NCBI GenBank assembly: GCA_002269645.1
Contig: NIVC01000978.1
Location: 248,001-312,000 of the forward strand
From: Macrostomum lignano
Taxonomy: Eukaryota
Direction: 5' to 3'
Length of the DNA stretch: 64,000 bases
The position numbers and the translations under genes were made by a program. Of the stretch, positions 228-41,636 are shown in pieces. Below the pieces are notes generated by a model. That model did not search any database, was not told the origin of the DNA, and was given only the letters and a program-made list of their open reading frames with translations. Every line of letters begins with the position of its first letter. Positions within the stretch are counted from its first letter, which is position 1.

Positions 228-578
228 GTCCAAGAGCAGCTGAAGAGCTCAGACCGAGGCACTCTAAAGAAGGGCCTGCTGGACATGCTTCGGCGGAAAC
301 TGCGCGAACTCGGCCGGAACTGGACCGAATACGGACCGCAGTTTAAAGGCAAATTCTACGACATACCGGAGCTGCTGCCCCGGATCGAGCCCCATCCGGA
401 CTCCGCTCTGCCAACGTTCAGCATGGACGAGACCGCGGCCGCCGCGTCAGCCAAGACTGAACTAGTGGAACCCGATCCTATGGGACCTGCACCCCACGTA
501 GCCATGGATGTGGAAGTGCCAACAAGTGGAAATCAACCGGAAAGTCAACTGGAATTGGCATCGGAACATCAAGATTAG
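228..578 (+). CDS. Probable terminal coding exon of a gene starting upstream of the window; product unknown
   Basis: Acceptor ttcag ends at 227 and an in-frame ORF (VQEQLKSSDRG...SEHQD*) runs to TAG at 578 with GC-rich codon-like composition. No family motif recognised. Confidence 0.4.
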   Translation, partial: VQEQLKSSDRGTLKKGLLDMLRRKLRELGRNWTEYGPQFKGKFYDIPELLPRIEPHPDSALPTFSMDETAAAASAKTELVEPDPMGPAPHVAMDVEVPTSGNQPESQLELASEHQD

Positions 579-999
579 CTGGAAATACAAAGGAATCAGA
601 ATCGAAGCTTGAAGTGTCATTTGCAATTAATTTCGAAAATGAAGTTTAGAAGTGATAATAATATTAATAGAAGTAATAAAAGACAGTAAAAATATCGGTA
701 CCGAAAGTTAAATGGAGGCCATCCACGAAAATGGGACAGAAGCTGAAAACAACATTCTCTGAAATAAGGCTGTAAGGGAAAAAATCGTCAGAAAAAAGAC
801 TGGAACTGAAATCGTGGTCTTGGAACAGAAAGAATCGTCGGAAGATATTTAAAAATGATATTTAAAAAATCAGACTGCAAATAGACAAGTTTAAAGAATC
901 CTTATTAATGAAACAGAAACTGATGACTTCCTTGCAAATGAGACATAAGCCGAAGGAATATTTGTACTTGAAGTAAATGAGCCAAACTAAAAGCAATAA

Positions 1000-2165
1000 T
1001 GGAAATGAGACATAAGCTGAAGGCATCCTTGGAAATGAAATAAGAGCTTGAAGACATTCTTGGAAATGAAGCAGAAGCTGAATACATTCTTTGTAATGAG
1101 ACGGAAGCTGAAGACATTGGAAATGAAGCAGAAGCTGAAGACATCCTTGGAAATGAGACGGAAGCTGAAGACATTGGAAATGAAACAGAAGCTGAAGACA
1201 TCCTTGGAAATGAGACGGAAGCTGAAGACATTGTAAATTTAACAGAAGCTGAATACATTCTTGGTAATGAGACGGAAGCTGAAGACATTGGAAATGAAAC
1301 AGAAGCTGAATACATTCTTGGTAATGAAAGGGAAGCTGAAGACATCCTTGGAAATGAGACGGAAGCTGAAGACATTGTAAATTTAACAGAAGCTGAATAC
1401 ATTCTTGGTAATGAGACGGAAGCTGAAGACATTGGAAATGAAACAGAAGCTGAAGACATCCTTGGAAATGAGACGGAAGCTGAAGACATTGTAAATTTAA
1501 CAGAAGCTGAATACATTCTTGGTAATGAGACGGAAGCTGAAGACATTGGAAATGAAACAGAAGCTGAATACATTCTTGGTAATGAAAGGGAAGCTGAAGA
1601 CATCCTTGGAAATGAGATGGAAGCTGAAGACATTGGAAATTTAACAGAAGCTGAATACATTCTTGGTGATGAGACGGAAGCTGAAGACATTGGAAATGAA
1701 ACAGAAGCTGAATACATTCTTGGTGATGAGACGGAAGCTGAAGACATTGGAAATGAAACAGAAGCTGGATACATTCTTGGTAATGAGACGGAAACTGAAG
1801 ACATTGGAAATTTAACAGAAGCTGAATACATTCTTGGTAATGAGACGGAAACTGAAGACATTGGAAATGAAACAGAAGCTGAATACATTCTTGGTAATGA
1901 GACGGAAGCTGAAGACATTGGAAATGAAACAGAAGCTGGATACATTCTTGGTAATGAGACGGAAGCTGAAGACATTGGAAATGAAACAGAAGCTGGATAC
2001 ATTCTTGGTAATGAGATGGAAGCTGAAGATATTGGAAATGAAACAGAAGCTGGATACATTCTTGGTAATGAGATGGAAGCTGAAGATATCCTTGGAAATA
2101 CGACGGAAGCTGAAGACATTGTAAATTAAACAGAAGCTGAATACATTCTTGGTAATGAGACGGTT
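1000..2165. repeat. Codon-phased 27/30-bp tandem repeat (GAAGCTGAAGACATTGGAAATGAAACA and variants)
   Basis: Units are multiples of 3. The + frame reads ETEAEDIGN/ETEAEYILGN without stops from about 1050 to 2129; the - strand is also open (905-2119). Confidence 0.9.
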
Positions 2166-2761
2166 TAATTGCATGGTAACCACCACTGACTCAACTGATT
2201 TTGCAATGTACTAGTAAGTTCAAAGCTTAAACAGAACTCCTAGTTTTAATTTACTAAGCTATCCGATCAAATGAGAGGTTCCTTTGATTTTTTCGCGGTA
2301 AGTGAAACTGACTTTGTGATTTATGCTTTATGCATCGTACGTTCACTATACTCTTTAACTTAATGTTTTTATCCGTAATTTAAAAAAAATTCGTTGTTTT
2401 AACGCTACCAACTCATTGATTTTCCAAACTGTTTAATTTCGAGTATATTTAATACCTTAGCTTAAGCTTAGCTTATTGTACATGTACCTTTTGTCATAAT
2501 ATTCAAACTTGATATAAACCATAGGCTCTCAACTTTAGATGTCATGACTATTAGCGGGACAAAAGTTACGAGCTACTATCCAACTTGCCTTCCCAAGTAG
2601 TTTACGCTAGAAATGTCTGTGCACATCAAAATTCGGCCATTTGTTTAGCGTTAACGCGCTTTTAATCGTGCAGTATTAATTATTCCATTTGTTTGTATTG
2701 TCACTTTATTTTGAAAAAGCTATTTTTAGTTTCCATAACAATAATTAACATAATTAGACTA

Positions 2762-3650
2762 CGTGGGCTGTGCGATACGAAGGAAAGGGTTGGTGTACAG
2801 GTATTGGCTTGGGCTGCGCGATAGGAAGGAAGGGGTGGGCGTTCAGATTTTGTGCTGGGGGCTGCGCTATACGAAGGAAGGGGTGGGTGTACAGATAATG
2901 GCTCGGGGCTGCGCGATAGGAAGGGAGGGGTGAGTGTTCAGATTTTGTGCTGGGGGCTGCGCGATACGAAGGAAGGGGTGGGTGTACAGATAATGGCTCG
3001 GGGCTGCGCGATAGGAAGGAAGGGGTGGGTGTACAGATAATGGCTCGGGGCTGCGCGATAGGAAGGGAGGGGTGGGTGTTCAGATTTTGTGCTGGGGGCT
3101 GCGCGATACGAAGGAAGGGGTGGGTGTACAGATAATGGCTTGGGGCTGCGCGATAGGAAGGGAGGGGTGGGTGTTCAGATTTTGTGCTGGGGGCTGCGCG
3201 ATAGGAAGGAAGGGGTGGGTGTTCAGATTTTGTGCTGGGGGCTGCGCGATACGAAGGAAGGGGTGGGTGTTCAGATTTTGTGCTGGGGGCTGCGCGATAG
3301 GAAGGAAGGGGTGGGTGTTCAGATTTTGTGCTGGGGGCTGCGCGATACGAAGGAAGGGGTGGGTGTACAGATAATGGCTCGGGGCTGCGCGATAGGAAGG
3401 GAGGGGTGAGTGTTTAGATTTTGTGCTGGGGGCTGCGCGATACGAAGGAAGGGGTGGGTGTACAGATAATGGCTTGGGGCTGCGCGATAGGAAGGGAGGG
3501 GTGGGTGTTCAGATTTTGTGCTGGGGGCTGCGCGATAGGAAGGAAGGGGTGGGTGTTCAGATTTTGTGCTGGGGGCTGCGCGATACGAAGGAAGGGGTGG
3601 GTGTTCAGATTTTGTGCTGGGGTTGCGTGATAAGAAGGGAGGGGTGGAGC
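2762..3650. repeat. G-rich ~47-48-bp minisatellite with two unit variants
   Basis: Repeated GGGCTGCGCGATA(G/C)GAAGGAAGGGGTGGGTGT(T/A)CAGAT...; measured period 48 at 3178/3226. Confidence 0.9.
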
Positions 3651-3773: not shown

Positions 3774-6700
3774 ATGCAGCAGCAGCAGAACCCAGATCTC
3801 CAAGCTGAGCAGCAGCAACAGCAGCAATCAAACCAGCCGGCACGAGCAAGCAATCAAAAGTCGTCTTTCGTTCAATCGGTTCCATTTTATCTGACCGATT
3901 TTCACGATCGCAATTATACAGACGACGATTTAATCGGAGATTTAGAGGCCGATTTAGCCAGGTACAGCGAAGCGGATCAGGTTGAGAGGGAGTTGGCGGA
4001 CAAGCGGCAGCAGGTTCAGCAGGCTAAGCAGAGCTGGCAGCAGGTTCAGCAGGCTAAGCAGAGCTTGCAGCAGCAGAAGGCTTCGACAGTTAGCGTTGAA
4101 AGGCGTCGCCGAGTGCAGCAACGGCAGGTCAGCCATGCCGAGACTCGGACGGCGGCGAAGCGACTGGCCGAGGCCTACCGGCTGGCAACCCTGCTGCAGT
4201 GAGGATTGGGGCCGATTCAGAGTTCAGTGTCAGTTTCAGGTAGTTGAGTGCCAGTTACAGATAGTAGTTGATGTTTCAGGTAGTTAAGTATCAGTTTCAG
4301 GTAGTTGAGTGTCAGTTTCAGGTAGTTGAGTGTCAGTGTCAGGTAAGCGCTAGCTGTGAAGACGCAGTTTCTCCGTTGTATCTTAATTCGCCACTGTCAA
4401 TCACGCCATCTCTTTCGCAGCTTCCTCAAAGTGGAAATGTCCAGAGAAGGGGAGGCAAAAATCTTGGAAGCAGCAGTTTCCGAAGAACTTGGCTGCAGAC
4501 ACCGGCCCTACTTCACCCTGTGGATCACTGGCGTTCACGTGATCCTGTTTGCAGTGTCCCTGCTGATGTTTGGCATTGTGACTCCCGGCATCAACACCGT
4601 TGTTCACCAGGACAAGATTGTGAAGGACAGGCACAATTTCAAGGTTAAGGTTAGTACTGTTTGTCTGTCTGTATGTCTGAGAGATGTCTGTCTGTATGTC
4701 TGAGAGATGTCTGTCTGTATGTCTGAGAGATGTCTGTCTGTATGTCTGAGAGCTGTCTGTCGACTGTATGTCTGAGAGGTGTCTGTCTGTATGTCTGAGA
4801 GATGTCTGTATGCACTGAATTTCTGTAAACGCAATCTGCCGCTTTGCTCTTCAATCGCAGATGTGCACCATAGACTATCCAAACTTTCTGATTGGCCCGC
4901 GACTGCCCGACCTGGTCAGGCTAGGGGCCAAGTACGGACCGTGCATGCGTCGGTACTCGAGTCTGTATAGGGATGTTTTAGATCGGCTGCGATTGGATGA
5001 AGCCGCTAGCGGTTGCTGCATTCATAACGACGGTTCCGCTTGCTATCAGAGTGACATGGCCGACTGTCCGGAGCATTTAGGCACCTGGCTTAAGTGGGAC
5101 AATGCTAGCAGGGTAAGTCACTTTTAAGTAAACTGTATGTATACGACTCGAATGTAAGTTGTAAAGTGATGGTAGCCATATAGAGCTCTATGGGGTGGGG
5201 GTTGGGGAAAAGTGGAGCTCTATAGGGTGTAAGGTTGGGGCAAGTAGAGCTCTATGGGGTGTGGGGTTGGGGCAAGTAGAGGTCTATGGGGTGTGGGGTT
5301 GGGGCAAGTGGAGGTCTATGGGATGTGGGGTTGGGGCAAGTGGAGGTCTATGGGGTGTGGGGTTGGGGCAAGTAGATGTCTATGGGGTGTGGGGTTGGGG
5401 CAAGTGGAGCTCTATGGGGTGTGGGGTTGGGCCAAGTGGAGGTCTATGGGGTGTGGGGTTGGGGCAAGTAGATGTCTATGGGGTGCGGGGTTGGGGCAAG
5501 TGGAGGTCTATGGGGTGTGGAGTGGGGGCAAGTGGAGCTCTATGGGGTGTGGGGTTGGGGCAAGTGGAGGTCTATGGGGTGTAGTGTTGGGGCAAATTGA
5601 GCTCTATGGGGTGTGGGGTAGGGGCAAGTGGAGCTCTATGGGGTGTGGGGTTGGGCCAAGTGGAGGTCTATGGGGTGTGGGGTTGGGGCAAGTAGAGCTC
5701 TATGGGGTGTGGGGTTGGGGCAAGTAGAGGTCTATGGGGTGTGGGGTTGGGGGCAGATGGAGCTCTATGTGGTGTGGTGTGGGGTTGGAACAAATGGAGC
5801 TCTATGGGGTGTGGGGTTGGGGCAAGTGGAGGTCTATGGGGTGTGGTGTTGGGGCAAATTGAGCTCTATGGGGTGTGGGTTAGGGGCAAGTGGAGCTCTA
5901 TGGGGTGTGGGGTTGGGGCAAGTGGAGGTCTATGGGGTGTGGTGTTGGGGCAAATTGAGCTCTATGGGGTGTGGGGTTGGGGCAAGGGGACGTCTATGGG
6001 GTGTGGGGTTGGAACAAATATAGCTCTATGGGGTGTGGGGTTGGGGCAAGTGAAGCTCTGGGGTGTGGGGTTGGGGCAAGTGGAGGTCTATGGGGTGTGG
6101 GGTTGGGGCAAGTGGAGGTCTATGGGGTGTGGGGTTGGGGGCAAATGGAGCTCTATGGGTGTGGGGTTGGGGGCAAATTGAGCTCTATGTGGTGTGGGGT
6201 TGGAACAAATGGAGCTCTATGGGGTGTGGGGTTGGGGCAAGGGGAGGTCTATGGGGTGTGGTGTTGGCAAATGGAGCTCTATGTGGTGTGGGGTTGGGGC
6301 AAGTGGAGCTTTATGGGGTGTGGGGCAAGTGGAGCTCTATGGGGTGTGGTGTTGGGTGCAAATGGAGCTCTATGTGGTGTGGGGTTGGGGCAAGTGGAGC
6401 TCTGGGGTGTGGGGTTGGGGCAAGTGGAGGTCTATGGGGTGTGGGGTTGGGGCAAATGGAGGTCTATGGGTGTGGGGTTGGGGGCAAATGGAGCTCTATG
6501 GGTGTGGGGTTGGGGGCAAATTGAGCTCTATGTGGTGTGGGGTTGGAACAAATGGAGCTCTATGGGGTGTGGGGTTGGGGCAAGGGGACGTCTATGGGGT
6601 GTGGTGTTGGCAAATGGAGCTCTATGTGGTGTGGGGTTGGGGCAAGTGGAGGTCTATGGGGTGTGGGGTTGGGGCAAGTGGAGGTCTATGGGGTGTGGGG

Positions 6701-9700
6701 TTGGGGGCAAATGGAGCTCTATGGGTGTGGGGTTGGGGGCAAATTGAGCTCTATGTGGTGTGGGGTTGGAACAAATGGAGCTCTATGGGGTGTGGGGTTG
6801 GGGCAAGTGGAGCTCTATGGGGTGTGGGGCAAGTGGAGCTCTATGGGGTGTGGGGTTGGGGCAAGTGGAGCTCTATGGGGTGTGGGGCAAGTGGAGCTCT
6901 ATGGGGTGTGGTGTTGGCAAATGGAGCTCTATAGGGTGTTGGGCAAGTGGAGCTCTATGGGGTGTGGGGCAAGTGGAGCTCTATGGGGTGTGGGGTTGGG
7001 GCAAGTGGAGCTCTATGGGGTGTGGGGCAAGTGGAGCTCTATGGGGTGTGGTGTTGGCAAATGGAGCTCTATAGGGTGTTGGGCAAGTGGAGCTCTATGG
7101 GGTGTGGGGCAAGTGGAGCTCTATGGGGTGTGGTGTTGGGTGCAAATGGAGCCCTATGTGGTGTGGGGTTGGGGCAAATGGAGCTCTATGTGGTGTGGTG
7201 TTGGGTGCAAATGGAGCTCTATGTGGTGTGGGGTTGGGTGCAAATGGAGCTCTATGTGGTGTGGGGTTGGGGCAAATGGAGCTCTATGTGGTGTGGTGTT
7301 GGGTGCAAATGGAGCTCTATGTGGTGTGGGGTTGGGTGCAAATGGAGCTCTATGTGGTGTGGGGTTGGGGCAAATGGAGCTCTATGTGGTGTGGGGTTGG
7401 GGCAAATGGAGCTCTATGGGGTGTGGGGCAAGTGGAGCTCTATGGGGTGTGGTGTTGGGTGCAAATGGAGCTCTATGTGGTGTGGGGTTGGGTGCAAATG
7501 GAGCTCTATGTGGTGTGGGGTTGGGGCAAATGGAGCTCTATGTGGTGTGGGGTTGGGGCAAATGGAGCTCTATGTGGTGTGGGGTTGGGGGCAAATGGAG
7601 CTCTATGTGGTGTGGGGTTGGGGGCAAATGGAGCTCTATGTGGTGTGGGGTTGGGGCAAATGGAGCTCTATGGGGTGTGCTGTTGGGGGCAAATGGAGCT
7701 CTATGTGGTGTGGGGTTGGGGCAAATGGAGCTCTATGGGGTGTGCTGTTGGGGGCAAATGGAGCTCTATGTGGTGTGGGGTTGGGGCAAATGGAGCTCTA
7801 TGGGGTGTGCTGTTGGGGGCAAATGGAGCTCTATGTGGTGTGGGGTTGGGGCAAATGGAGCTCTATGGGGTGTGCTGTTGGGGGCAAATGGAGCTCTATG
7901 TGGTGTGGGGTTGGGGCAAATGGAGCTCTATGGGGTGTGCTGTTGGGGGCAAATGGAGCTCTATGTGGTGTGGGGTTGGGGCAAATGGAGCTCTATGGGG
8001 TGTGCTGTTGGGGGCAAATGGAGCTCTATGTGGTGTGGGGTTGGGGCAAATGGAGCTCTATGGGGTGTGCTGTTGGGGGCAAATGGAGCTCTATGTGGTG
8101 TGGGGTTGGGTGCAAATGGAGCTCTATGTGGTGTGGGGTTGGGGCAAATGGAGCTCTATGTGGTGTGGTGTTGGGTGCAAATGGAGCTCTATGTGGTGTG
8201 GGGTTGGGTGCAAATGGAGCTCTATGTGGTGTGGGGTTGGGGCAAATGGAGCTCTATGTGGTGTGGGGTTGGGGCAAATGGAGCTCTATGGGGTGTGGGG
8301 CAAGTGGAGCTCTATGGGGTGTGGTGTTGGGTGCAAATGGAGCTCTATGTGGTGTGGGGTTGGGGCAAATGGAGCTCTATGTGGTGTGGGGTTGGGGGCA
8401 AATGGAGCTCTATGTGGTGTGGGGTTGGGGCAAATGGAGCTCTATGTGGTGTGGGGTTGGGGGCAAATGGAGCTCTATGTGGTGCGGGGTTGGGGCAAAT
8501 GGAGCTCTATGTGGTGTGGGGTTGGGGGCAAATGGAGCTCTATGTGGTGTGGTGTTGGCAAATGGAGCTCTATGTGGTGTGGGGTTGGGGGCAAATGGAG
8601 CTCTATGTGGTGTGGGGTTGGGGCAAATGGAGCTCTATGTGGTGTGGGGTTGGGGGCAAATGGAGCTCTATGTGGTGTGGGGTTGGGGCAAATGGAGCTC
8701 TATGTGGTGTGGGGTTGGGGCAAATGGAGCTCTATGTGGTGTGGGGTTGGGGCAAATGGAGCTCTATGTGGTGTGGGGTTGGGGGCAAATGGAGCTCTTT
8801 GGGGTGTGGTGTTGGCAAATGGAGCTCTATGTGGTGTGGTGTTGGCAAATGGAGCTCTATGTGGTGTGGGGTTGGGGCAAATGGAGCTCTGAACCTACGG
8901 GCAAGAGACCTGCACTTGATTGACTCGTATAACCTTAGATGAGTATCAGCTGATCTCATTGACGCACTCCCTCGCTAAAAAATCGCAGGGACCGGATGGC
9001 CGACTCAGCGGCCCCGTATGCGGAGCGGACCCTCGCACCTGCGATCAGCCGCTGTCGCTTCTCGGCGGTGGCGTCAGCGTCTGGGCCGACGATGTGACTC
9101 GATGGCCGGCCTGCCAGAGGCAGACTCCGCTAGCGCCTGTGCCTGGGGAGTTGAACCACCTGGCCTGTCCGGTCAGCGCCAGGCCCTGTTGCTTCGGCTT
9201 GATCGGTGAGTAGCGATGGTAGATGGGCAATTCACCTGGTTGAACCATTTGGGGGCATTCAATTTGCAAAATAATGCTTTCAGGGATCATGCGAGCGTAC
9301 ATGTAAAGCCGTAAAGACGGTCTCTGACTGTTTTTACCCTGGCTGCCTCTCTGGTAGCTTGTCTTAGGGTTGTGCGCAATCCGATTGGCCTGGCTTCGGC
9401 TAGCCCAATTTTTTAAGGGTCCGCCCGGAGGGGCTGTGCCCATTAAAAAAATAACCCAATTTTTCATTCCAATTATTTCGGCCCTCGGCCCTGGTTTAGG
9501 GGGGGGGGTGTACCTGGAGTGAGTGTGTACTCTGGACTGCAGTGTGGCTAGAACGGGGCTTGAGCCCCCCGGTCGTACCCGCCCTGCAGGAAAGAATGAC
9601 CATTCACGAAGGTTTACGGTAGAGCCTAGTTGATGCCAGCCCTGAGGCTGTGCCCCTGGAAGCAGGTCAGTAAGCAGCCTGCTAAGTAGGGTTCAGGTGC

Positions 9701-12700
9701 TTCTCCGTCCTGTTTTTATCACCATTACTTGTATATTGGTTTTATTAATGTAAGGCCTTTGACTGCCGCTCCAATTTTCCGGAGTTATGAGCTCTGCCCT
9801 CCCTGCCCGGTCCATCCTGCGCTGTCCTTGGTCCATCTGCTGGCTCCTCTGGCTGTCTCCCTGCCTAAGTGTCTCTGGCTCTCATCCTGACAGTGGATTG
9901 GTGTCCTGGGTTGGATGTTCGTCCCGAATCGGGGATACCGGCTGAGTCCGGGTCCTCTTGCTCCTTGTGCCCCTTTCCCGACCCCTTGGCCTGGCCTCCA
10001 ATATTGAGCTGGATAGGCGATACCCTTGGGTTTGTAGCCGGTAGACGGTCTTCCTGCCTGGAGTCTCGCCCTCGGAAACAAGCCTTCCAGACTCGTTCCA
10101 ATAGCAAAGCCTTTTCCGTAGACTTCGGGGTTTCCCCGCTCTCGGACCGCTCTCAGTAGTAACCCAAGCTTTTTTTCGCATTTCCATTTTTTTCTGCGCA
10201 CTCCCGAGGACTTGTCTGCTGGGGGGTGGCCTGGGTGGACTCGGTCTCAGCACCGTCCCTGATTCCACTTTTGGGTTGGCGGTGTCTTGTACCGTAGGTT
10301 TGGGCTAGTAGCACCAATTCACTAGGCTCTCACCAGAGTCCTGAGCTCTGGTCCCAATTGTGGCCTCTCGGGCTACATGCCCCTGGTAGTATGGCCCACA
10401 GACAGATCCCTGCGGTAGAGCCCCCTTTCGGGCTGATCCGCGGCAAGCCCCTGGCTTTCCACCCCCGTTTAACAACAACAACAACATGTAAAGTTAGGAA
10501 TTGATGCAGACCTGCATTACACTACTGATAGTAGCTGCAGAATTAAAAATAGTTAAGGATGGTTTGAAACGGCGCCAACAAGAGATAAGCAATCAACCAT
10601 TTTTAGCCGCTATTTTACTCAGCCTAGCTTAATCAGCTCAGATACTCTGGTTATATGGCTGCAGTGTTTCAGCATTTGGGGATGAGGGCAGAAAAGTTTA
10701 TACGCAAGCTTTTAACTTGATTTCTTGCATTCAGTTTATTCATCTCCGAGGACAGGGAGATCGAGAAGTTGCGATGGAATTGTGAATAGTTTCCAGTCTG
10801 AGACAGCCTATTTATTGGGACAGCATACAGTAGTCAAATCAACTGGGACAGCCTACAGTAGTCAAATCAACTGGGACAGCCTACAGTAGTCAAATCAACT
10901 GGGACAGCCTACAGTAGTCTGATCAACTGGGACAGCCTACAGTAGTCAAATCAACTGGGACAGCCTACAGTAGTCTGATCAATTGGGACAGCCTACAGTA
11001 GTCTGATCAACTGGGACAGCCTACAGTAGTCAAATCAACTGGGACAGCCTACAGTAGTCTGATCAACTGGGACAGCCTACAGTAGTCAAATCAACTGGGA
11101 CAGCCTACAGTAGTCTGATCAACTGGGACAGCATACAGTAGTCAAATCAACTGGGACAGCCTACAGTAGTCAAATCAACTGGGACAGCCTACAGTAGTCA
11201 AATCAACTGGGACAGCCTACAGTAGTCAAATCAACTGGGACAGCCTACAGTAGTCAAATCAACTGGGACAGCCTACAGTAGTCTGATCAACTGGGACAGC
11301 ATACAGTAGTCAAATCAACTGGGACAGCCTACAGTAGTCAAATCAACTGGGACAGCCTACAGTAGTCAAATCAACTGGGACAGCCTACAGTAGTCAAATC
11401 AACTGGGACAGCCTACAGTAGTCAAATCAACTGGGACAGCCTACAGTAGTCTGATCAACTGGGACAGCCTACAGTAGTCAAATCAACTGGGACAGCCTAC
11501 AGTAGTCTGATCAACTGGGACAGCCTACAGTAGTCAAATCAACTGGGACAGCATACAGTAGTCAAATCAACTGGGACAGCATACAGTAGTCAAATCAACT
11601 GGGACAGCCTACAGTAGTCAAATCAACTGGGACAGCCTACAGTAGTCTGATCAACTGGGACAGCCTACAGTAGTCAAATCAACTGGGACAGCATACAGTA
11701 GTCAAATCAACTGGGACAGCCTACAGTAGTCAAATCAACTGGGACAGCCTACAGTAGTCAAATCAACTGGGACAGCCTACAGTAGTCTGATCAACTGGGA
11801 CAGCCTACAGTAGTCAAATCAACTGGGACAGCCTACAGTAGTCAAATCAACTGGGACAGCCTACAGTAGTCAAATCAACTGGGACAGCCTACAGTAGTCA
11901 AATCAACTGGGACAGCCTACAGTAGTCAAATCAACTGGGACAGCCTACAGTAGTCTGATCAACTGGGACAGCCTACAGTAGTCAAATCAACTGGGACAGC
12001 CTACAGTAGTCTGATCAACTGGGACAGCCTACAGTAGTCAAATCAACTGGGACAGCCTACAGTAGTCAAATCAACTGGGACAGCCTACAGTAGTCAAATC
12101 AACTGGGACAGCCTACAGTAGTCAAATCAACTGGGACAGCATACAGTAGTCAAATCAACTGGGACAGCCTACAGTAGTCAAATCAACTGGGACAGCCTAC
12201 AGTAGTCTGATCAACTGGGACAGCCTACAGTAGTCAAATCAACTGGGACAGCCTACAGTAGTCTGATCAACTGGGACAGCCTACAGTAGTCAAATCAACT
12301 GGGACAGCCTACAGTAGTCAAATCAACTGGGACAGCCTACAGTAGTCAAATCAACTGGGACAGCCTACAGTAGTCAAATCAACTGGGACAGCATACAGTA
12401 GTCAAATCAACTGGGACAGCCTACAGTAGTCAAATCAACTGGGACAGCCTACAGTAGTCTGATCAACTGGGACAGCCTACAGTAGTCAAATCAACTGGGA
12501 CAGCCTACAGTAGTCTGATCAACTGGGACAGCCTACAGTAGTCAAATCAACTGGGACAGCCTACAGTAGTCAAATCAACTGGGACAGCCTACAGTAGTCA
12601 AATCAACTGGGACAGCCTACAGTAGTCTGATCAACTGGGACAGCCTACAGTAGTCAAATCAACTGGGACAGCCTACAGTAGTCTGATCAACTGGGACAGC

Positions 12701-15700
12701 CTACAGTAGTCAAATCAACTGGGACAGCCTACAGTAGTCTGATCAACTGGGACAGCCTACAGTAGTCTGATCAACTGGGACAGCCTACAGTAGTCAAATC
12801 AACTGGGACAGCCTACAGTAGTCAAATCAACTGGGACAGCCTACAGTAGTCTGATCAACTGGGACAGCCTACAGTAGTCAAATCAACTGGGACAGCCTAC
12901 AGTAGTCTGATCAACTGGGACAGCCTACAGTAGTCAAATCAACTGGGACAGCCTACAGTAGTCTGATCAACTGGGACAGCCTACAGTAGTCAAATCAACT
13001 GGGACAGCATACAGTAGTCAAATCAACTGGGACAGCCTACAGTAGTCTGATCAACTGGGACAGCCTACAGTAGTCTGATCAACTGGGACAGCCTACAGTA
13101 GTCTGATCAACTGTTACAGCCTACAGTAGTCAAATCAACTGGGACAGCCTACAGTAGTCTGATCAACTGGGACAGCCTACAGTAGTCTGATCAACTGGGA
13201 CAGCCTACAGTAGTCTGATCAACTGGGACAGCATACAGTAGTCAAATCAACTGGGACAGCCTACAGTAGTCAAATCAACTGGGACAGCCTACAGTAGTCA
13301 AATCAACTGGGACAGCCTACAGTAGTCAAATCAACTGGGACAGCCTACAGTAGTCTGATCAACTGGGACAGCCTACAGTAGTCAAATCAACTTGGACAGC
13401 CTACAGTAGTCTGATCAACTGGGACAGCCTACAGTAGTCTGATCAACTGGGACAGCCTACAGTAGTCTGATCAACTGTTACAGCCTACAGTAGTCAAATC
13501 AACTGGGACAGCCTACAGTAGTCTGATCAACTGGGACAGCCTACAGTAGTCAAATCAACTGGGACAGCCTACAGTAGTCTGATCAACTGGGACAGCCTAC
13601 AGTAGTCAAATCAACTGGGACAGCCTACAGTAGTCAAATCAACTGGGACAGCCTACAGTAGTCTGATCAACTGGGACAGCCTACAGTAGTCAAATCAACT
13701 GGGACAGCCTACAGTAGTCAAATCAACTGGGACAGCCTACAGTAGTCTGATCAACTGGGACAGCCTACAGTAGTCTGATCAACTGGGACAGCCTAAAGTA
13801 GTCAAATCAACTGGGACAGCCTACAGTAGTCTGATCAACTGGGACAGCCTACAGTAGTCTGATCAACTGGGACAGCCTACAGTAGTCTGATCAACTGGGA
13901 CAGCCTACAGTAGTCTGATCAACTGGGACAGCCTACAGTAGTCTGATCAACTGGGACAGCCTACAGTAGTCTGATCAACTGGGACAGCCTACAGTAGTCA
14001 AATCAACTGTTACAGCCTACAGTAGTCAAATCAACTGAGACAGCCTACAGTAGTCTGATCAACTGGGACAGCCTACAGTAGTCAAATCAACTGGGACAGC
14101 CTACAGTAGTCTGATCAATTGGGACAGCCTACAGTAGTCAAATCAACTGGGACAGCCTACAGTAGTCAAATCAACTGGGACAGCCTACAGTAGTCTGATC
14201 AACTGGGACAGCCTACAGTAGTCAAATCAACTGGGACAGCCTACAGTAGTCAAATCAACTGGGACAGCCTACAGTAGTCTGATCAACTGGGACAGCCTAA
14301 AGTAGTCAAATCAACTGGGACAGCCTACAGTAGTCTGATCAACTGGGACAGCCTACAGTAGTCTGATCAACTGGGACAGCCTACAGTAGTCTGATCAACT
14401 GGGACAGCCTACAGTAGTCAAATCAACTCTTACAGCCTACAGTAGTCTGATCAACTGGGACAGCCTACAGTAGTCAAATCAACTGGGACAGCCTACAGTA
14501 GTCTGATCAATTGGGACAGCCTACAGTAGTCAAATCAACTGGGACAGCCTACAGTAGTCAAATCAACTGGGACAGCCTACAGTAGTCTGATCAACTGGGA
14601 CAGCCTACAGTAGTCAAATCAACTGGGACAGCCTACAGTAGTCAAATCAACTGGGACAGCCTACAGTAGTCTGATCAATTGGGACAGCCTACAGTAGTCT
14701 GATCAACTGGGACAGCCTACAGTAGTCAAATCAACTGGGACAGCCTACAGTAGTCAAATCAACTGGGACAGCCTACAGTAGTCAAATCAACTGGGACAGC
14801 CTACAGTAGTCTGATCAATTGGGACAGCCTACAGTAGTCTGATCAACTGGGACAGCCTACAGTTGTCAAATCAACTGGGACAGCCTACAGCAGTCAAATC
14901 AACTGGGACAGCCTACAGTAGTCTAATCAACTCTTACAGCCTACAGTAGTCAAATCAACTGTTACAGCCTACAGTAGTCAAATCAACTCTTACAGCCTAC
15001 AGCAGTCAAATCAACTGGGACAGCCTACAGTAGTCATATCAACTGGGACAGCCTACAGTAGTCAAATCAACTGGGACAGCCTACAGTAGTCTGATCAACT
15101 GGGACAGCCTACAGTAGTCAAATCAACTGGGACAGCCTACAGTACTCAAATCAACTGGGACAGCCTACAGTAGTCTGATCAATTGGGACAGCCTACAGTA
15201 GTCTGATCAACTGGGACAGCCTACAGTAGTCAAATCAACTCGGACAGCCTACAGTAGTCAAATCAACTGGGACAGCCTACAGTAGTCTGATCAACTGGGA
15301 CAGCCTACAGTAGTCTGATCAACTGGGACAGCCTACAGTAGTCTGATCAACTGGGACAGCCTACAGCAGTCAAATCAACTGGGATAGCCTACAGTAGTCA
15401 AATCAACTGTTACAGCCTACAGTAGTCAAATCAACTGAGACAGCCTACAGTAGTCAAATCAACTGGGACAGCCTACAGTAGTCAAATCAACTGGGACAGC
15501 CTACAGTAGTCAAATCAACTCTTACAGCCTACAGTAGTCAAATCAACTGGGACAGCCTACAGTAGTCAAATCAACTGGGACAGCCTACAGTAGTCAAATC
15601 AACTGGGACAGCCTACAGTAGTCAAATCAACTGGGACAGCCTACAGTAGTCTAATCAACTGGGACAGCCTACAGTAATCTGATCAATTGGGACAGCCTAC

Positions 15701-18700
15701 AGTAGTCAAATCAACTGTTACAGCCTACAGTAGTCAAATCAACTGAGACAGCCTACAGTAGTCAAATCAACTGGGACAGCCTACAGTAGTCAAATCAACT
15801 GGGACAGCCTACAGTAGTCAAATCAACTCTTACAGCCTACAGTAGTCAAATCAACTCTTACAGCCTACAGTAGTCAAATCAACTGGGACAGCCTACAGTA
15901 GTCTGATCAACTGGGACAGCCTACAGTAGTCAAATCAACTGGGACAGCCCACAGTAGTCAAATCAACTTGGACAGCCTACAGTAGTCTGATCAACTGGGA
16001 CAGCCTACAGTAGTCTGATCAACTGGGACAGCCTACAGTAGTCAAATCAACTGGGACAGCCTACAGTAGTCTAATCAACTGGGACAGCCTACAGTAGTCT
16101 GATCAACTGGGACAGCCTACAGTAGTCTGATCAATTGGGACAGCCTACAGTAGTCAAATCAACTGGGACAGCCTACAGTAGTCAAATCAACTGGGACAGC
16201 CTACAGTAGTCAAATCAACTGGGACAGCCTACAGTAGTCAAATCAACTGGGACAGCCTACAGTAGTCTGATCAACTGGGACAGCCTACAGTAGTCAAATC
16301 AACTGGGACAGCCTACAGTAGTCTGATCAACTGGGACAGCCTACAGTAGTCTGATCAACTGGGACAGCCTACAGTAGTCAAATCAACTGGGACAGCCTAC
16401 AGTAGTCAAATCAACTGGGACAGCCTACAGTAGTCAAATCAACTGGGACAGCCTACAGTAGTCAAATCAACTGGGACAGCCTACAGTAGTCTGATCAACT
16501 GGGACAGCCTACAGTAGTCAAATCAACTGGGACAGCCTACAGTAGTCTGATCAACTGGGACAGCCTACAGTAGTCTGATCAACTGGGACAGCCTACAGTA
16601 GTCAAATCAACTGGACAGCCTACAGTAGTCAAATCAACTGGGACAGCCTACAGTAGTCAAATCAACTGGGACAGCCTACAGTAGTCAAATCAACTGGGAC
16701 AGCCTACAGTAGTCAAATCAACTGTTACAGCCTACAGTAGTCTGATCAACTGGGAGGTTTTATTAGAAGAGTTTTAGCTCCGGGTTTTAGTTCCAGATCT
16801 CTTTGGTTGAGGAAGGCCTCTGACGCCGCTTCCACCCCTCCATCTCCAACTTCGCATCAGCTTGGCCACTCTTCCGATAATAAAAAATGACCGACCATTG
16901 ATGCCACCTCGCCAATTTATGCAATAATCGTTATTTTATAAGGCTACCGCAGTTCCATTTTATAATTACTCTGCAACTCGCAGGGCCAAGCATTTGTTTG
17001 CTTAGAAGAGCCAATTTAATCAATATAGCGATGCCGCACGGAGTGGGATTGTATTTATAGCTAAAGCATCGCTATTTCGCAAATTTATCTCTTTAGCTTT
17101 TAGTCAGCCCTCAATTTGTTTTTTACTGTTTCTGCACTAGTCTGACTGCAGACAGATTCTCGGTAGCTTCTTACTATGGACCAATATTGAGCTCTTATTG
17201 AAAATTGTCTCCACATTCAAAAAAACAAAAAACACATTTTTAAAAGATGAAATTTAAATTCGGTTTTAAGAGGTTATAAAACTTGACGATACATTTATAA
17301 AGCCAGGTGAAGCAATTGCAAGCTTGTTCAATAGACAAGCATTAACAATCGGTGCTTGAAAGAGCTGTTACAAAACTCACGATACCTTTATAAAACAGGT
17401 GAATTAATTACGAGCTTGTTCAATACACAAGCATTAACAATCGGTGCTTAAAAGAGCTGTTACAAAACTCACGATACCTTTATAAAACAGGTGAATTAAT
17501 TACGAGCTTGTTCAATACACAAGCATTAACAATCGGTGCTTAAAAGAGCTGTTACAAAACTCACGATACCTTTATAAAACAGGTGAATTAATTACGAGCT
17601 TGTTCAATACACAAGCATTAACAATCGGTGCTTAAAAGAGCTGTTACAAAACTCACGATACCTTTATAAAACAGGTGAATTAATTACGAGCTTGTTCAAT
17701 ACACAAGCATTAACAATCGGTGCTTAAAAGAGCTGTTACAAAACTCACGATACCTTTATAAAACAGGTGAATTAATTACGAGCTTGTTCAATACACAAGC
17801 ATTAACAATCGGTGCTTAAAAGAGCTGTTACAAAACTCACGATACCTTTATAAAACAGGTGAATTAATTACGAGCTTGTTCAATACACAAGCATTAACAA
17901 TCGGTGCTTAAAAGAGCTGTTACAAAACTCACGATACCTTTATAAAACAGGTGAATTAATTACGAGCTTGTTCAATACACAAGCATTAACAATCGGTGCT
18001 TAAAAGAGCTGTTACAAAACTCACGATACCTTTATAAAACAGGTGAATTAATTACGAGCTTTTTCAATACACAAGCATTAACAATCGGTGCTTGAAAGAG
18101 CTGTTACAAAACTCACGATACCTTTATAAAACAGGTGAATTAATTACGAGCTTGTTCAATACACAAGCATTAACAATCGGTGCTTAAAAGAGCTGTTACA
18201 AAACTCACGATACCTTTATAAAACAGGTGAATTAATTACGAGCTTGTTCAATACACAAGCATTAACAATCGGTGCTTAAAAGAGCTGTTACAAAACTCAC
18301 GATACCTTTATAAAACAGGTGAATTAATTACGAGCTTGTTCAATACACAAGCATTAACAATCAGTGCTTAAAAGAGCTGTTACAAAACTCACGATACCTT
18401 TATAAAACAGGTGAATTAATTACGAGCTTGTTCAATACACAAGCATTAACAATCGGTGCTTAAAAGAGCTGTTACAAAACTCACGATACCTTTATAAAAC
18501 AGGTGAATTAATTACGAGCTTGTTCAATACACAAGCATTAACAATCGGTGCTTAAAAGAGCTGTTACAAAACTCACGATACCTTTATAAAACAGGTGAAT
18601 TAATTACGAGCTTGTTCAATACACAAGCATTAACAATCGGTGCTTAAAAGAGCTGTTACAAAACTCACGATACCTTTATAAAACAGGTGAATTAATTACG

Positions 18701-21700
18701 AGCTTGTTCAATACACAAGCATTAACAATCGGTGCTTAAAAGAGCTGTTACAAAACTCACGATACCTTTATAAAACAGGTGAATTAATTACGAGCTTGTT
18801 CAATACACAAGCATTAACAATCGGTGCTTAAAAGAGCTGTTACAAAACTCACGATACCTTTATAAAACAGGTGAATTAATTACGAGCTTGTTCAATACAC
18901 AAGCATTAACAATCAGTGCTTAAAAGAGCTGTTACAAAACTCACGATACCTTTATAAAACAGGTGAATTAATTACGAGCTTGTTCAATACACAAGCATTA
19001 ACAATCGGTGCTTAAAAGAGCTGTTACAAAACTCACGATACCTTTATAAAACAGGTGAATTAATTACGAGCTTGTTCAATACACAAGCATTAACAATCGG
19101 TGCTTAAAAGAGCTGTTACAAAACTCACGATACCTTTATAAAACAGGTGAATTAATTACGAGCTTGTTCAATACACAAGCATTAACAATCGGTGCTTAAA
19201 AGAGCTGTTACAAAACTCACGATACCTTTATAAAACAGGTGAATTAATTACGAGCTTGTTCAATACACAAGCATTAACAATCGGTGCTTAAAAGAGCTGT
19301 TACAAAACTCACGATACCTTTATAAAACAGGTGAATTAATTACGAGCTTGTTCAATACACAAGCATTAACAATCGGTGCTTAAAAGAGCTGTTACAAAAC
19401 TCACGATACCTTTATAAAACAGGTGAATTAATTACGAGCTTGTTCAATACACAAGCATTAACAATCGGTGCTTAAAAGAGCTGTTACAAAACTCACGATA
19501 CCTTTATAAAACAGGTGAATTAATTACGAGCTTGTTCAATACACAAGCATTAACAATCGGTGCTTAAAAGAGCTGTTACAAAACTCACGATACCTTTATA
19601 AAACAGGTGAATTAATTACGAGCTTGTTCAATACACAAGCATTAACAATCGGTGCTTAAAAGAGCTGTTACAAAACTCACGATACCTTTATAAAACAGGT
19701 GAATTAATTACGAGCTTGTTCAATACACAAGCATTAACAATCGGTGCTTAAAAGAGCTGTTACAAAACTCACGATACCTTTATAAAACAGGTGAATTAAT
19801 TACGAGCTTGTTCAATACACAAGCATTAACAATCGGTGCTTGAAAGAGCTGTTACAAAACTCACGATACCTTTATAAAACAGGTGAATTAATTACGAGCT
19901 TGTTCAATACACAAGCATTAACAATCGGTGCTTGAAAGAGCTGTTACAAAACTCACGATACCTTTATAAAACAGGTGAATTAATTACGAGCTTGTTCAAT
20001 ACACAAGCATTAACAATCGGTGCTTAAAAGAGCTGTTACAAAACTCACGATACCTTTATAAAACAGGTGAATTAATTACGAGCTTGTTCAATACACAAGC
20101 ATTAACAATCGGTGCTTAAAAGAGCTGTTACAAAACTCACGATACCTTTATAAAACAGGTGAATTAATTACGAGCTTGTTCAATACACAAGCATTAACAA
20201 TCGGTGCTTAAAAGAGCTGTTACAAAACTCACGATACCTTTATGAAACCAGGTGAAAGTCTAGAAAGATATATTATAATAGTATTAAAAACTTTAAACCA
20301 TGTGGACACCAAGCTTAAAAGTAGAAATCATCGACTTTCATTAAAAATTATTTGGCATTAAATAATTCTATCGATACTTGCTTTCGTGCGTTTAAAACAA
20401 ATGTTCAAAATAGCTTTACAAAGCTGACTTCGCTCAATTAGTATGAAGCATTTTGAATTGTTTGTTAGTTCAAACAAGCGGATCGATGCACTCGCACAGG
20501 CACTTTAGAACATTGGTGTAGCTCTCGGTGAGGTCGTTGATTCCATAGCTGTGCGTGTACCAGATATTCCCTCGATACGACGAATCGCCCATATTTGGCT
20601 GACCAGGGTTCCAGACCTCAGGCAGGAAGGTGAAATTGCAGTGCTCCCAAATCCAGGTGCCAGTGCTATAGCTACCGATTCTGTAGCCGCCAATGAGATA
20701 GCCAGAGCCGGTGCTTTCTTGAGTCTTCAGCCAGTGCATGTATTCAACTTCGGCTCTGTCCAGTCCATCAGCGTACTTGGTCAGTCCAGGCTCTGAGTTG
20801 CACTTCTAAGATCCTTCAGTCCAGGTGCTTGCCGGATAGAACTTATAGGTCATGCCGTGATTTTCATAGCCGTAGCCGCTTGGGCACAACTGGCCATTGG
20901 GCAGGTTCTTCATGTTGCGAACAAATGCCCAGCCAAAGTCGGTGCAGTTCGGCTTTTTAGGCATGTGAGTGCACGCGTCGAATAGGAACATCTGGCAGCC
21001 GAGGCCGTTGCCGCCAGGCTGACGGAAGCCGCGGCAAGATGGGCCCCGCTCGGTGCAGGCGAACGCGCACTGCATCTCCGTGGCCTTGTCCAATTCGGCC
21101 GGTTCAACAATGAGCTCCGGCTTCAGGCAGAGTCGGATGTACTTTTCCACGAACGTGTTGTCGGGTTGGCTGTACAAGACAGCGAGTGGTAGGCTTGTAA
21201 TTAGCATCATCAGAATTGACAGGCAGATCGATGGAGCGGCTGAAAGTAAAAAGAAAATAATTATCTAATTAAAGTGAGCAATAGTGGTACTGAGTGGCAC
21301 TTTTAATATTGTGAATTTCAATATTATATTATACTCACAGGTAGTTTCCATGATGAAGAAATCGACTCAGAGTTGCTGCTTTTAGATTTTAATTTGACGC
21401 AAAATTATCGTGTGAGTAGGCTTACGACTAAATTTTTAGTGTTTGGGATCAATTTTCCAACCAATGGAGAGCAAGGCGAGAAACAGAAGAAAGCTTGCTC
21501 TGCTCAATTATTTGCTCTAAGTCTAGGTAATCGCCAGAGGCTTCAAGGCTCAGCCACTGCGTGGTTGGCCGTTCCTAATTTAAGCAGCAGTAAATGATTG
21601 TATTTGCTTTATTGGTTACCATGCAACGGAAGAGATGGCATTGCCTAGTGAGTACGTATATTAGGTAAAATATGGGGAGCGGAGCGGGGCGGAGCGGAAG

Positions 21701-21704
21701 CAGT

Positions 21705-21735
<31 letters not shown>

Positions 21736-22122
21736 GACACTGACTGACTGACTGACTGACTGACTAACGAGCTAAATAACTGACAATAATAATATAATAA
21801 TTAAATACACCTGCCCTAATGAGCATATGTGCAACCGACAGCTCAGCCGCAGCTATTGTGCGGCGCATCTGAAGGCTGCGTACGGCTGTTCAGTCCAAGA
21901 ACTGGGGGGTCGCCACACACACCCTCAGTTACCCCAGCTAATGCTGGCACCCATTTTACAGCTGGGTAAACTGAAGCAATGCGGATTTAAGTGTCTTGCT
22001 CAAGGACACAAATTGTTCCAATGGGATCGGGAATCGAACCCCTGACCTTTTAGTCGTGAGTGCGACGCTCTAACCACTAGGCTGCAACCTCTTGGAACAA
22101 CTTGAACAACTGACAAGCTGAC

Positions 22123-22158
<36 letters not shown>

Positions 22159-22163
22159 TTAAT

Positions 22164-22204
<41 letters not shown>

Positions 22205-22205
22205 T

Positions 22206-22252
<47 letters not shown>

Positions 22253-22273
22253 GACTAACTAACTAACTAACTT

Positions 22274-22328
<55 letters not shown>

Positions 22329-36430: not shown

Positions 36431-37183
36431 TCTTATATATAACTCTTGTGGTATAGTTTCAATATTTCAGCATTTTGGGATGAGGGCAGAAAAATTTTAA
36501 CCGTAGGCAATTACTTAATTGATTGCCTTTAATTTATTTGTTCTCGCGAGGTCAATTGTGAATATTTTTATTTGGTCTTTTTCAGCCTTTAGTAGCGTTT
36601 CATTCTAGCAGTAGAACTGCCAGAAGTCGCCCCTGACCATTTTTGCTGCTGAGCAATGCAGGCACACGAAACCCCATAACGCAGACAAACTTTTTGTTGT
36701 GCATCTTTTCAAATAAATATTAAGTCACCAGCCCTCCAGACCGTCGAGATATTAAAAATTCGCCTCAGTGCAGCCTTGCCAAGTCTCCAAACTCTTAAAA
36801 CGGTAAGCCGACGGATGTCCCGAATACGGGAATACGGGACAAGCAGCCACTTCTGCTGCAGCCGAAAACTTAAAACTAAGCTCTATGGTCAAAACTGCAG
36901 CTGCGCTGCACTGCCGTTGCCGATGGCTGTGTCCCAAAAACGGGACACACAGCTTTATTTTAATTTAAAATAAGTGAAAGTGCTAACAGAACAGAAACAG
37001 GATTAGAACAGATAATTTTGGATTGACACCATAGCAACGGAAAGCTCCTTGTTAGGGTACTCCATAAATATTTAAATTTTATTCAAGGGTGGGGACAAAA
37101 AGGGAGCGGGTTAGGAATGGAAAGAGCAAAGTCAACCGAGGGTGTGGAAGAAAAAAACATGAAGACGAGAAGTTCTGTAACAG

Positions 37184-40253: not shown

Positions 40254-41150
40254 TCAAACAAACGGATCGATGCACTCGCACAGGCACTTTTCAACATTGG
40301 TGTAGCTCTCAGTGAGGTCGTTGATTCCGTAGCTGTGCGTGTACCAGATATTCCCTCGATACGACGAATCGCCCATATTTGGCTGGCCAGGGTTCCAGAC
40401 CTCAGGCAGGAAGGTGAAGTTGCAGTGCTCCCAAATCCAGGTGCCAGTGCTAAAGCTACCGATTCTGTAGCCGCCAATGAGATAGCCATATCCAATGCTT
40501 TCTTGTGTCTTCAGCCAGTGCATGTATTCAATTTCGGCTCTGTCCAGTCCATCAGCGTACTTGGTCAGTCCGGGCTCTGAGTTGCACTTCTGAGATCCTT
40601 CAGTCCAGGTGCTTGCCGGATAGAACTTGTAGGTCATGCCGTGATTTTCATAGCCGTAGCCGCTTGGGCACAACTGGCCATTGGGCAGGTTCTTCATGTT
40701 GCGAACAAATGCCCAGCCAAAGTCGGTGCAGTTCGGCTTTTTAGGCATGTGAGTGCACGCGTCGAATAGGAACATCTGGCAGCCGAGGCCGTTGCCGCCA
40801 GGCTGACGGAAGCCGCGGCAAGATGGGTCCCGCTCGGTGCAGGCGAACGCGCATTGCATCTCCGTGGCCTTGGCCAATTCGGCCGGTTCAACAATGAGCT
40901 CCGGCTTCAGGCAGAGTCGGATGTACTTTTCCACGAACGTGTTGTCGGGTTGGCTGTACAAGACAGCGAGTGGTAGGCTTGTAATTAGCACTGCCAGAAT
41001 TGACAGGCAGATCGATTGAAGAACTGCTGAAAAAATGAAAATAATTATAAAATTAGATTTTAGGCGCCTCACAGAGTCACAGTCAAGTTCAAAGCGTAAT
41101 ACTTTTATCATTTTGGATGTTAATAATATAATATATTATAGTATATATAT

Positions 41151-41635: not shown

Positions 41636-41636
41636 C

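Follow-up and report, generated by a model that had tools for sequence, protein, structure and literature searches.

In the genome of Macrostomum lignano, a ~1.18-kb non-coding RNA ending in (AAC)n was reverse-transcribed into a staggered nick at ACATGTAAAG, and this RNA started no more than one base away from the start site of the spliced-leader (SL) RNA, carrying SL nt 1-22/23 followed by unrelated sequence. We put at about even odds (probability roughly 0.5) that this is a young LINE-type (target-primed) insertion of an RNA polymerase II (Pol II) non-coding RNA with an SL-type start site, derived from the master copy of a non-autonomous retroposon. The insert is probably a non-autonomous retroposon copy, and not the classical SINE or the SL-RNA mimic that the initial annotation had envisaged. 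One copy cannot establish a new mobile-element family; an SL-headed insert is nonetheless unusual.

Anatomy of the insertion

The features of the insertion and its surroundings, numbered along the window (the whole 64-kb stretch of DNA that was analyzed), are as follows.

8995..9168, + strand: exon-1-like remnant of a rhomboid-family paralogue (54% amino acid identity to A0A1I8H3A3, residues 3-66)
9299..9308, no strand: left target-site duplication (TSD) copy ACATGTAAAG, whose last G is possibly the first base of the inserted RNA
9308..9330, + strand: SL-derived 5' tag, matching a genuine M. lignano-type SL RNA gene from its 5' end on at 22 of 23 nt
9308..9451, + strand: structured head of ~140 nt with five predicted hairpins, folding on the + strand only
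9311..9337, + strand: predicted 12-bp 5' hairpin (two G.U pairs, loop UCU) that pairs SL bases with subsequent non-SL bases
9452..10470, + strand: non-coding body with no protein domain and no SL RNA similarity, mostly unstructured
10412..10441, + strand: 3' stem-loop named by the initial annotation (4+5 bp, internal loop)
10471..10485, + strand: (AAC)5 microsatellite tail, whose final AC overlaps the right TSD copy
10484..10493, no strand: right TSD copy ACATGTAAAG, 10/10 identical to the left copy

The two TSD copies, which bracket a unit of 1175 bp, lie where the initial annotation had placed a perfect 10-bp duplication and are the only occurrences of ACATGTAAAG on either strand of the window. 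By itself, a repeated 10-mer is weak evidence of insertion; three such direct repeats, all exact, occur in the 1.4-kb region, and at 0.43% of non-satellite positions the preceding 10-mer recurs 300 to 3000 nt downstream. The weight of the TSD evidence rests on where the copies sit: the left one adjoins the SL-identical start, and the right one adjoins, with a 2-nt overlap, the (AAC)5 run that had likewise been reported at the end of the unit and that is one of just five trinucleotide runs in the 64 kb to reach four units or more. The AC common to tail and target is a microhomology of the kind expected from target-primed reverse transcription. With the start of the unit no more than 1 nt from the SL RNA 5' end, the features of LINE-mediated insertion are all present (a short perfect TSD, a tail abutting it with microhomology, and an intact template 5' end), and the anatomy, with its TSD, microsatellite tail and lack of an open reading frame, supports a retroposed non-coding insertion.

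At 55.7% GC, the element is indeed GC-rich, as first described, relative to its immediate flanks (43.5% in the 70 nt before it and 40% in the 320 nt after it), but GC content marks a boundary only in part, with 8891-9229 upstream reaching 62%. The rhomboid-family exon remnant shares the strand of the insertion and lies 140 bp upstream of it. Both flanks have paralogues inside the window, upstream 8993-9197 resembling 32711-32933 and downstream 10644-10792 resembling 36442-36568; as candidate empty sites these were rejected, the sequence near the insertion point being too diverged. About half of the window is minisatellite.

The spliced-leader tag and the structured head

The window contains an exon 100% identical to UniRef A0A1I8H3A3 (M. 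lignano), and CCGTAAAGACGGTCTCT at 9309-9325 reproduces 17 nt of the published leader of that species without a mismatch. This 17-mer is unique in the window even when three mismatches are permitted, and its chance expectation is ~1e-5 per 64 kb. A metagenome scan with the leader 17-mer returned 47 loci, 46 of which represent chance and one of which (L044) is a real SL RNA gene, specifying a 109-nt RNA (615-723) with a GTAAG donor that matches the description in PMC8629364. Against positions 615-637 of this gene, and including the ambiguous G at 9308, the tag agrees at 22 of 23 nt, the sole mismatch being a T>G at 9326; the same count, given in the initial annotation, is thereby confirmed. SL homology begins at the insertion boundary and breaks off at 9330, and the DNA upstream of the boundary is unrelated to SL. 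Judged by this identity, the 5' end of the unit really does derive from the species' own spliced leader, from the 5' end of the SL RNA on.

The likeness goes no further. Allowing up to two mismatches, the element matches no 14-mer from leader nt 13-44; it lacks the 3' half of the leader with its terminal AUG, the GTAAG donor, and the intron of the SL RNA, and its first 100 nt contain no ATG; and similarity to SL past nt 23 is nonsignificant against shuffles in two tests (p = 0.13 and 0.8). An SL RNA gene has a complete leader exon ending in AUG and then a GU donor, and here identity stops at nt 22/23. Relative to the L044 SL RNA, with which the element shares a 5' end and those first nucleotides, there is no significant intron similarity, and the predicted fold of the head has five hairpins as opposed to three. 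Reading the whole head as a diverged SL RNA, with a donor-like GGTAGC at nt 46/47 and an Sm-like U tract, is unsupported by alignment statistics and by the fold. In an SL RNA, the intron part has an unpaired Sm-like site flanked by two hairpins; the U-rich tract of the element, at first suggestive of such a site, is base-paired in the predicted fold, and AAUUUUUUAAGG at 9408-9419 resembles AUUUUUAG of L044 but is predicted to pair with 9440-9450. With neither a GTAAG donor nor an SL intron and with the U tract predicted to be paired, nothing suggests the capacity for Sm/snRNP assembly or trans-splicing that had been proposed for an SL-RNA mimic. As far as its sequence and modeled fold indicate, the element is not an SL RNA, and it gives no sign of donating a leader or of binding Sm proteins.

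Predicted structure is concentrated at the 5' end and on one strand. The first ~150 nt fold with z scores of -3.6 to -4.0 on the + strand, compared with -0.3 on the - strand, and the head closes with ATTAAA and A7 (9442-9451), which may mark an old junction or be an A-rich linker. The 5' hairpin has a predicted dG of -13.2 kcal/mol, whereas the 5' end of the true SL reaches -5.6; the lone mismatch to SL contributes a closing C-G pair, a gain of 2.7 kcal/mol. Random continuations of the tag were as stable in 0.3-1.6% of trials (p ~0.003-0.016), a modest statistic obtained post hoc. The 3' stem-loop fares differently from how it was first described: formerly called strong, it lies in a 3' stretch of 104 nt that folds no better than shuffles (z = -0.12). 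A telomerase-RNA-like structured RNA was also considered and rejected, there being no template-like repeat and structure being limited to the first 150 nt and 9509-9658.

Element class and source RNA

Six-frame searches of the unit returned no Pfam domain, consistent with the initial finding of no reverse transcriptase or endonuclease frame, and Rfam searches returned no family at E <=10. The unit is non-coding and TSD-flanked with a LINE-type 3' tail, as SINEs are, but it possesses neither an internal Pol III promoter head nor a body that Pol III could transcribe. T runs are numerous on the + strand (T5 at nt 23-27, T6 at nt 101-106, and eight more of at least four, many of them in the body), and those of T5-T7 are Pol III terminators, which rules out Pol III transcription. 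Together with its length of 1175 bp and the absence of a tRNA or Rfam head, this sets the element apart from classical SINEs, with which the initial annotation had compared it. A search for a tRNA head found no tRNA in the element, and the U1-like 5' sequence UUACCCUGGC has no Rfam U1 match. CCAAT motifs number eight on the + strand over the whole element.

Neither poly(A) nor AATAAA/ATTAAA occurs near the 3' end of the element, and it is therefore not an ordinary mRNA retrocopy. Nor is it simply a 5'-truncated LINE, since more than 1.1 kb upstream of the tail contains no reverse transcriptase remnant. A DNA transposon or Helitron was rejected for the lack of terminal inverted repeats and the presence of a TSD. 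Within the window, blastn detected no other copy of the element, and no partner LINE with the same 3' end was found; the only LINE remnant there, at 38.8-39.5 kb (RNase H, 39231-39431), shares no 3' end with the element and has no (AAC)n. Protein searches with the element's open reading frames and exact look-ups of frames from the element and from the window likewise revealed no copies, in collections that do not include the M. lignano genome and hence carry little weight either way. Two weak matches in the protein search (E about 1e-3) are unrelated repetitive proteins. A 20-mer from the head had no match in bacterial or archaeal genomes or in viral contigs (collections again without the M. 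lignano genome).

How such an RNA may have arisen can be outlined as follows. The source RNA would have been transcribed by Pol II, like SL and snRNA genes, because the T5 run at nt 23-27 would terminate Pol III. The SL tag would be an integral, evolved part of the source element and not an accident of one insertion, because it is locked in the 12-bp hairpin with non-SL bases and heads a 140-nt domain structured on one strand. If the tag is integral, origin from a master copy of a non-autonomous retroposon is most likely, its 3' end with (AAC)n being presumably recognized in trans by a LINE reverse transcriptase. The tag itself could be what is left of an ancestral SL RNA gene that kept only its start-proximal 22 nt, or could have been acquired by residence inside an SL RNA gene, with transcription from the SL promoter. 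Counting against a retroposon are the single copy seen, a length of 1175 bp that is long for a non-autonomous retroposon, and the fact that a 22-nt tag could come from a single chimeric event.

Somewhat short of an even chance, we would tentatively entertain a whole M. lignano family of Pol II-transcribed, LINE-mobilized non-coding retroposons headed by the first 22 nt of the SL in a 5' hairpin. In such a family the tag may act as a start-site or promoter-proximal element taken over from the SL RNA gene, or may mark a lineage that dwells in SL RNA genes and is driven by their promoter.

Competing explanations and known systems

Unlikely, but the foremost competitor, is a one-off chimeric retrocopy, in which a LINE reverse transcriptase, at work on an unrelated non-coding RNA (or an untagged non-autonomous element), switched near the 5' end to SL RNA or to an SL-capped transcript and ran off its 5' end, comparable to mammalian U6-L1 chimeras. 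Such an event would fit the abrupt end of SL homology after nt 22 with no trace of the SL remainder, the exact coincidence of the two 5' ends, the LINE machinery indicated by TSD and tail, and the single copy in the available data. Known LINE chimeras, however, contain the complete small RNA, since the enzyme switches to the small RNA's 3' end, and here it would have to enter the acceptor internally, at nt 22. The pairing of post-junction bases with SL bases in the 12-bp hairpin (p about 0.003-0.016) also argues against a chimera, as does the strengthening of that hairpin by the lone SL mismatch, unexpected for a random junction in a young insertion with a perfect TSD.

Less probable still is a retroposon resident in the SL gene, whose master would sit inside an SL RNA gene at leader nt 22/23 and be driven by the SL promoter, the present copy being an off-target insertion; SLACS, CZAR, and CRE of trypanosomatids and NeSL-1 of nematodes offer parallels. 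Residence accounts for a start exactly at that of SL and for the sudden loss of homology, with no need for an internal promoter. Site-specific non-LTR elements are known to target SL exons, and flatworms harbor the NeSL-related LIN/R5 lineage (PMC4640811); the 35-nt query behind the published SL gene count spans nt 22 and would miss interrupted genes (PMC8629364). The present target, moreover, ends in GTAAAG (the last 6 nt of the left TSD copy), which equals SL nt 3-8, but is otherwise unlike SL around nt 22 near 9308. The copy is not in an SL gene, its flanks and the rest of the window contain none, it encodes no reverse transcriptase or endonuclease, and the model does not predict a junction-spanning hairpin. 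The element may nevertheless be a non-autonomous derivative of an SL-gene-specific non-LTR retrotransposon.

We regard as improbable the retrocopying of a trans-spliced transposon or non-coding-gene transcript with the full 44-nt leader, the 3' half of the leader being lost by reverse transcriptase skipping or later deletion. Trans-splicing affects ~30-39% of M. lignano genes and also transposon transcripts in Hydra, and this mechanism has been put forward for 597 parasitic-flatworm loci at which partial leader sequences adjoin LINE or LTR elements (PMC12582326), loci that also weaken the initial annotation's claim that the head type is new among described elements. A retrocopied trans-spliced mRNA should show the full leader or its 3' part and a poly(A) signal and tail, none of which is present here, nor is any coding remnant. 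The 5' truncation common in LINE insertions keeps the 3' part of the leader, so the loss of nt 23-44 calls for an extra event, and the perfect TSD speaks against extensive later decay. Finally, although 10-mer direct repeats are common in this repeat-rich region, the absence of any mobile insertion, with repeat and SL-like 17-mer both coincidental or an assembly artefact, is very hard to credit given that an exact leader 17-mer is expected about 1e-5 times in 64 kb and that one repeat copy lies precisely at the SL start and the other where one of the five trinucleotide runs ends.

Were the family reading true, flatworms would have their first described retroposon that is headed by SL or associated with SL genes. 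SL RNA would join the few cellular RNAs that lend retroposons a 5' end, a Pol II, snRNA-type route to non-autonomous retroposition would be demonstrated, and the first 22 nt of the leader would be dispersed across the genome of an animal that trans-splices the transcripts of about a third of its genes. Tagged copies would lead to spurious SL RNA gene calls, and a search with the full leader would overlook SL genes that are interrupted. A single chimera would be a curiosity, showing only that this worm's LINE enzymes can capture the 5' end of SL RNA.

Among known systems, SINEs (derived from tRNA, 7SL, or 5S, and the snRNA-derived SINEU) share with the element a non-coding, TSD-flanked structure, a small nuclear RNA 5' end, and a LINE-type microsatellite tail, whereas the element keeps only 22-23 nt of the small RNA, is 1175 bp long, has Pol III terminators from nt 23 on, and lacks an A/B-box type head. 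The flatworm partial-SL loci (PMC12582326) and the SL-relic retrogenes of dinoflagellates (PMC6050394) resemble it in having a DNA-encoded leader piece 5' of a retroposed sequence in a trans-splicing host; being read as copies of trans-spliced transcripts, they are expected to carry the whole leader or its 3' part, whereas the element has the 5' half only, a non-coding body, and an (AAC)n rather than a poly(A) tail. RNAs of SLACS, CZAR, CRE1/2, and NeSL-1 can also start with the first bases of the leader, because these elements sit in the leader exon and use the SL RNA promoter, and in them too the leader breaks off at a fixed internal position; the present copy, in contrast, lies outside an SL gene with a 10-bp TSD at an unrelated site and has no reverse transcriptase or endonuclease. 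LINE chimeras (U6-L1 and the U3-, 5S-, and 7SL-mRNA fusions) likewise join a small nuclear RNA 5' end to another RNA within one TSD-flanked insertion, but theirs is a full-length small RNA with a poly(A) tail, and the element described here combines a 22-nt 5' fragment with an (AAC)n tail.

Anatomy of the insertion

Within the window, the 10-mer ACATGTAAAG occurs only at 9299-9308 and 10484-10493, and the 1175 bp between its two copies (9309-10483; GC content, 55.7%) constitute an element that starts with GCCGTAAAG and ends in (AAC)5 (10471-10485); the whole 64 kb has just five trinucleotide runs of this kind (at least 4 units). A 10-mer direct repeat is by itself unremarkable: three exact ones lie in the 1.4 kb that includes the element, and at 0.43% of nonsatellite positions in the window, the preceding 10-mer recurs 300 to 3000 nucleotides (nt) downstream. 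The significance of this pair derives from its placement, with the left copy ending where the match to the spliced leader (SL) starts and the right copy starting where (AAC)5 ends, 'AC' being common to both. The paired duplication and the microhomology between tail and target are the anatomy of target-primed reverse transcription, and we take the pair to be a genuine target-site duplication (TSD) of 8 to 10 bp, whose perfect state marks the insertion as young. GTAAAG, with which the TSD ends (9303-9308 and 10488-10493), is also SL nt 3-8, which come two bases later; this identity could be coincidental or could point to a preference for SL-like targets.

As the initial annotation stated, the element has no reverse transcriptase or endonuclease open reading frame (ORF): Pfam searches of all six frames returned no domain, and its ORFs, none longer than 153 amino acids, are without relatives. 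Its 3' end has neither a poly(A) signal nor a poly(A) tail and so is not that of an ordinary mRNA retrocopy. T runs on the + strand (T5 at nt 23-27, T6 at nt 101-106, and eight others) mean that Pol III could not transcribe the element, which excludes a classical SINE head by function as well as by sequence (Rfam returned nothing for the element at gathering thresholds or at E ≤ 10, and ARAGORN found no tRNA). The supposedly strong 3' hairpin (10412-10441) is a stem of 4 + 5 bp with an internal loop, and shuffled sequences fold as well as the last 104 nt do (z = -0.12).

The spliced-leader tag

The published leader of Macrostomum lignano is CCGTAAAGACGGTCTCTTACTGCGAAGACTCAATTTATTGCATG (PMC5173321), and its SL RNA is 109 nt long, has a GTAAG donor, and is present in 8 copies in the deduplicated genome (PMC8629364). 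A metagenome scan with a leader 17-mer gave 46 chance matches and one contig, L044, that contains exactly the published leader and, after it, GTAAGA, a hairpin, AUUUUUAG, and another hairpin. This contig, which supplied the reference SL RNA gene for our comparisons, has the following features, whose joint presence shows that Macrostomum DNA occurs in that JGI metagenome.

L044 (JGI metagenome contig Ga0302322_100095745), 615-723: SL RNA gene, M. lignano type
Same contig, 1774-2922: intronless ORF for a Na/K-ATPase beta chain

The SL tag of the element (window 9308-9330) is identical to L044 615-637 at 22 of 23 positions. Homology starts at the G/C of the insertion boundary and the DNA 5' of it is unrelated, so the inserted RNA began at, or at most one base from, the start of the SL RNA. 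The retroposed insertion is genuine and recent, and its 5' tag truly derives from the SL, bearing out the TSD-bounded, SL-headed insertion originally described; the element is not, however, a classical SINE.

The resemblance goes no farther. None of the 14-mers from leader nt 13-44 has a match in the element; past nt 23, the head (9308-9451) aligns globally with the SL RNA no better than shuffles do (p = 0.13), and local alignment of the rest of the SL RNA to the whole element gives a best match of the quality expected by chance (p = 0.8). Neither an AUG nor, at the homologous position, a GTAAG is present; a U-rich tract (9408-9419) considered as an Sm site is predicted to pair with 9440-9450. 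Given this loss of similarity past nt 22/23 and the absence of any Rfam or tRNA match, the unit is SL-tagged, not the SL-RNA mimic of the initial annotation: of the proposed SL-RNA-derived retroposon, the retroposed anatomy and the 5' tag stand, and SL similarity beyond the tag does not.

The first ~150 nt fold strongly on the + strand only (z = -3.6 to -4.0, versus -0.3 for the other strand), with a predicted 12-bp hairpin that pairs tag nt 3-14 with nt 18-29, including two G.U pairs. Its ΔG is -13.2 kcal/mol, compared with -5.6 for the 5' end of the genuine SL RNA; seven pairs use non-SL bases, random continuations were as stable in 0.3 to 1.6% of trials, and the C-G pair that closes the stem is due to T>G at 9326, the sole difference between tag and leader. 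At the end of the head, ATTAAA + A7 (9442-9451) resembles an old junction or linker. The element (9309-10483) has 8 copies of CCAAT on its + strand, with ~1 expected (maximum of 6 in 5000 Markov-1 simulations, a post hoc comparison), and the genuine SL RNA has two.

Genomic neighborhood

The 1.9-kb spacer that contains the element separates a 32-mer from a 28-mer array; about half of the window is minisatellite (units of 20 to 92 bp, up to 212 copies).

5175-8890 (32-mer), 10816-16755 (28-mer), 17273-20256, 24294-27886, 44181-44574, 56525-58104, and others: minisatellite arrays
8995-9168, + (the element's strand): lone exon-1-like remnant of a rhomboid-family paralogue, ending 140 bp upstream of the element
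21044-24061, 32707-34480, 40828-42947: rhomboid-like gene, tandem diverged paralogues (as is the remnant)
37199-37974, -: piggyBac-type transposase remnant (DDE_Tnp_1_7 and zinc finger)
39231-39431, -: LINE-type RNase H fragment adjoining the transposase
62307-62993 and 63044-63679: Myb/SANT-domain exon and, ahead of it, a 690-bp (CTGT)n-based repeat

The 29-mer unit of the array at 24294-27886 is found again at 44181-44574. M. lignano A0A1I8H3A3 (UniRef) matches an ORF at 33047-33553 with 100% identity, and its remaining exons map to 32707-32904 and 34271-34480; overall, the rhomboid-like copy at 32.7 to 34.5 kb is 97 to 100% identical to that protein. The Myb/SANT-exon protein has no match in a collection of 5.8 billion proteins.

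Origin of the element

That the tag differs from the leader at one base and is woven with the bases that follow into a stable, strand-specific structure suggests that the junction between SL(1-22) and body predates the present insertion and was already part of the source RNA. We therefore favor, at a probability of about 0.5, a copy of a nonautonomous retroposon, whose Pol II transcript, with the junction already present, would be mobilized by a LINE recognizing its (AAC)n-tailed 3' end. The 64-kb window contains one copy only; its sole LINE remnant, the RNase H fragment, has nothing in common with the element and is not followed by an (AAC)n tail, and its paralogous segments have diverged too far near the insertion site to stand in for an empty one. 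A one-off template-switch chimera is unlikely, if the best of the alternatives.

Less probable is transcription of the source RNA from an SL RNA gene that a site-specific element had interrupted at nt 22/23. SLACS, CZAR, CRE, and NeSL-1 are precedents for such interruption, and the NeSL-related LIN/R5 elements occur in flatworms (PMC4640811). We doubt still more that the element copies a trans-spliced transcript whose leader lost its 3' half, the mechanism proposed for 597 partial-leader loci adjoining LINE/LTR elements in parasitic flatworms (PMC12582326), which predicts retention of the 3' part, the opposite of what is seen. Coincidence or assembly artifact is very improbable. The parasitic-flatworm loci make leader fragments at retroelement ends less novel; the 3' part of the leader is expected there, whereas the element has the 5' part only.
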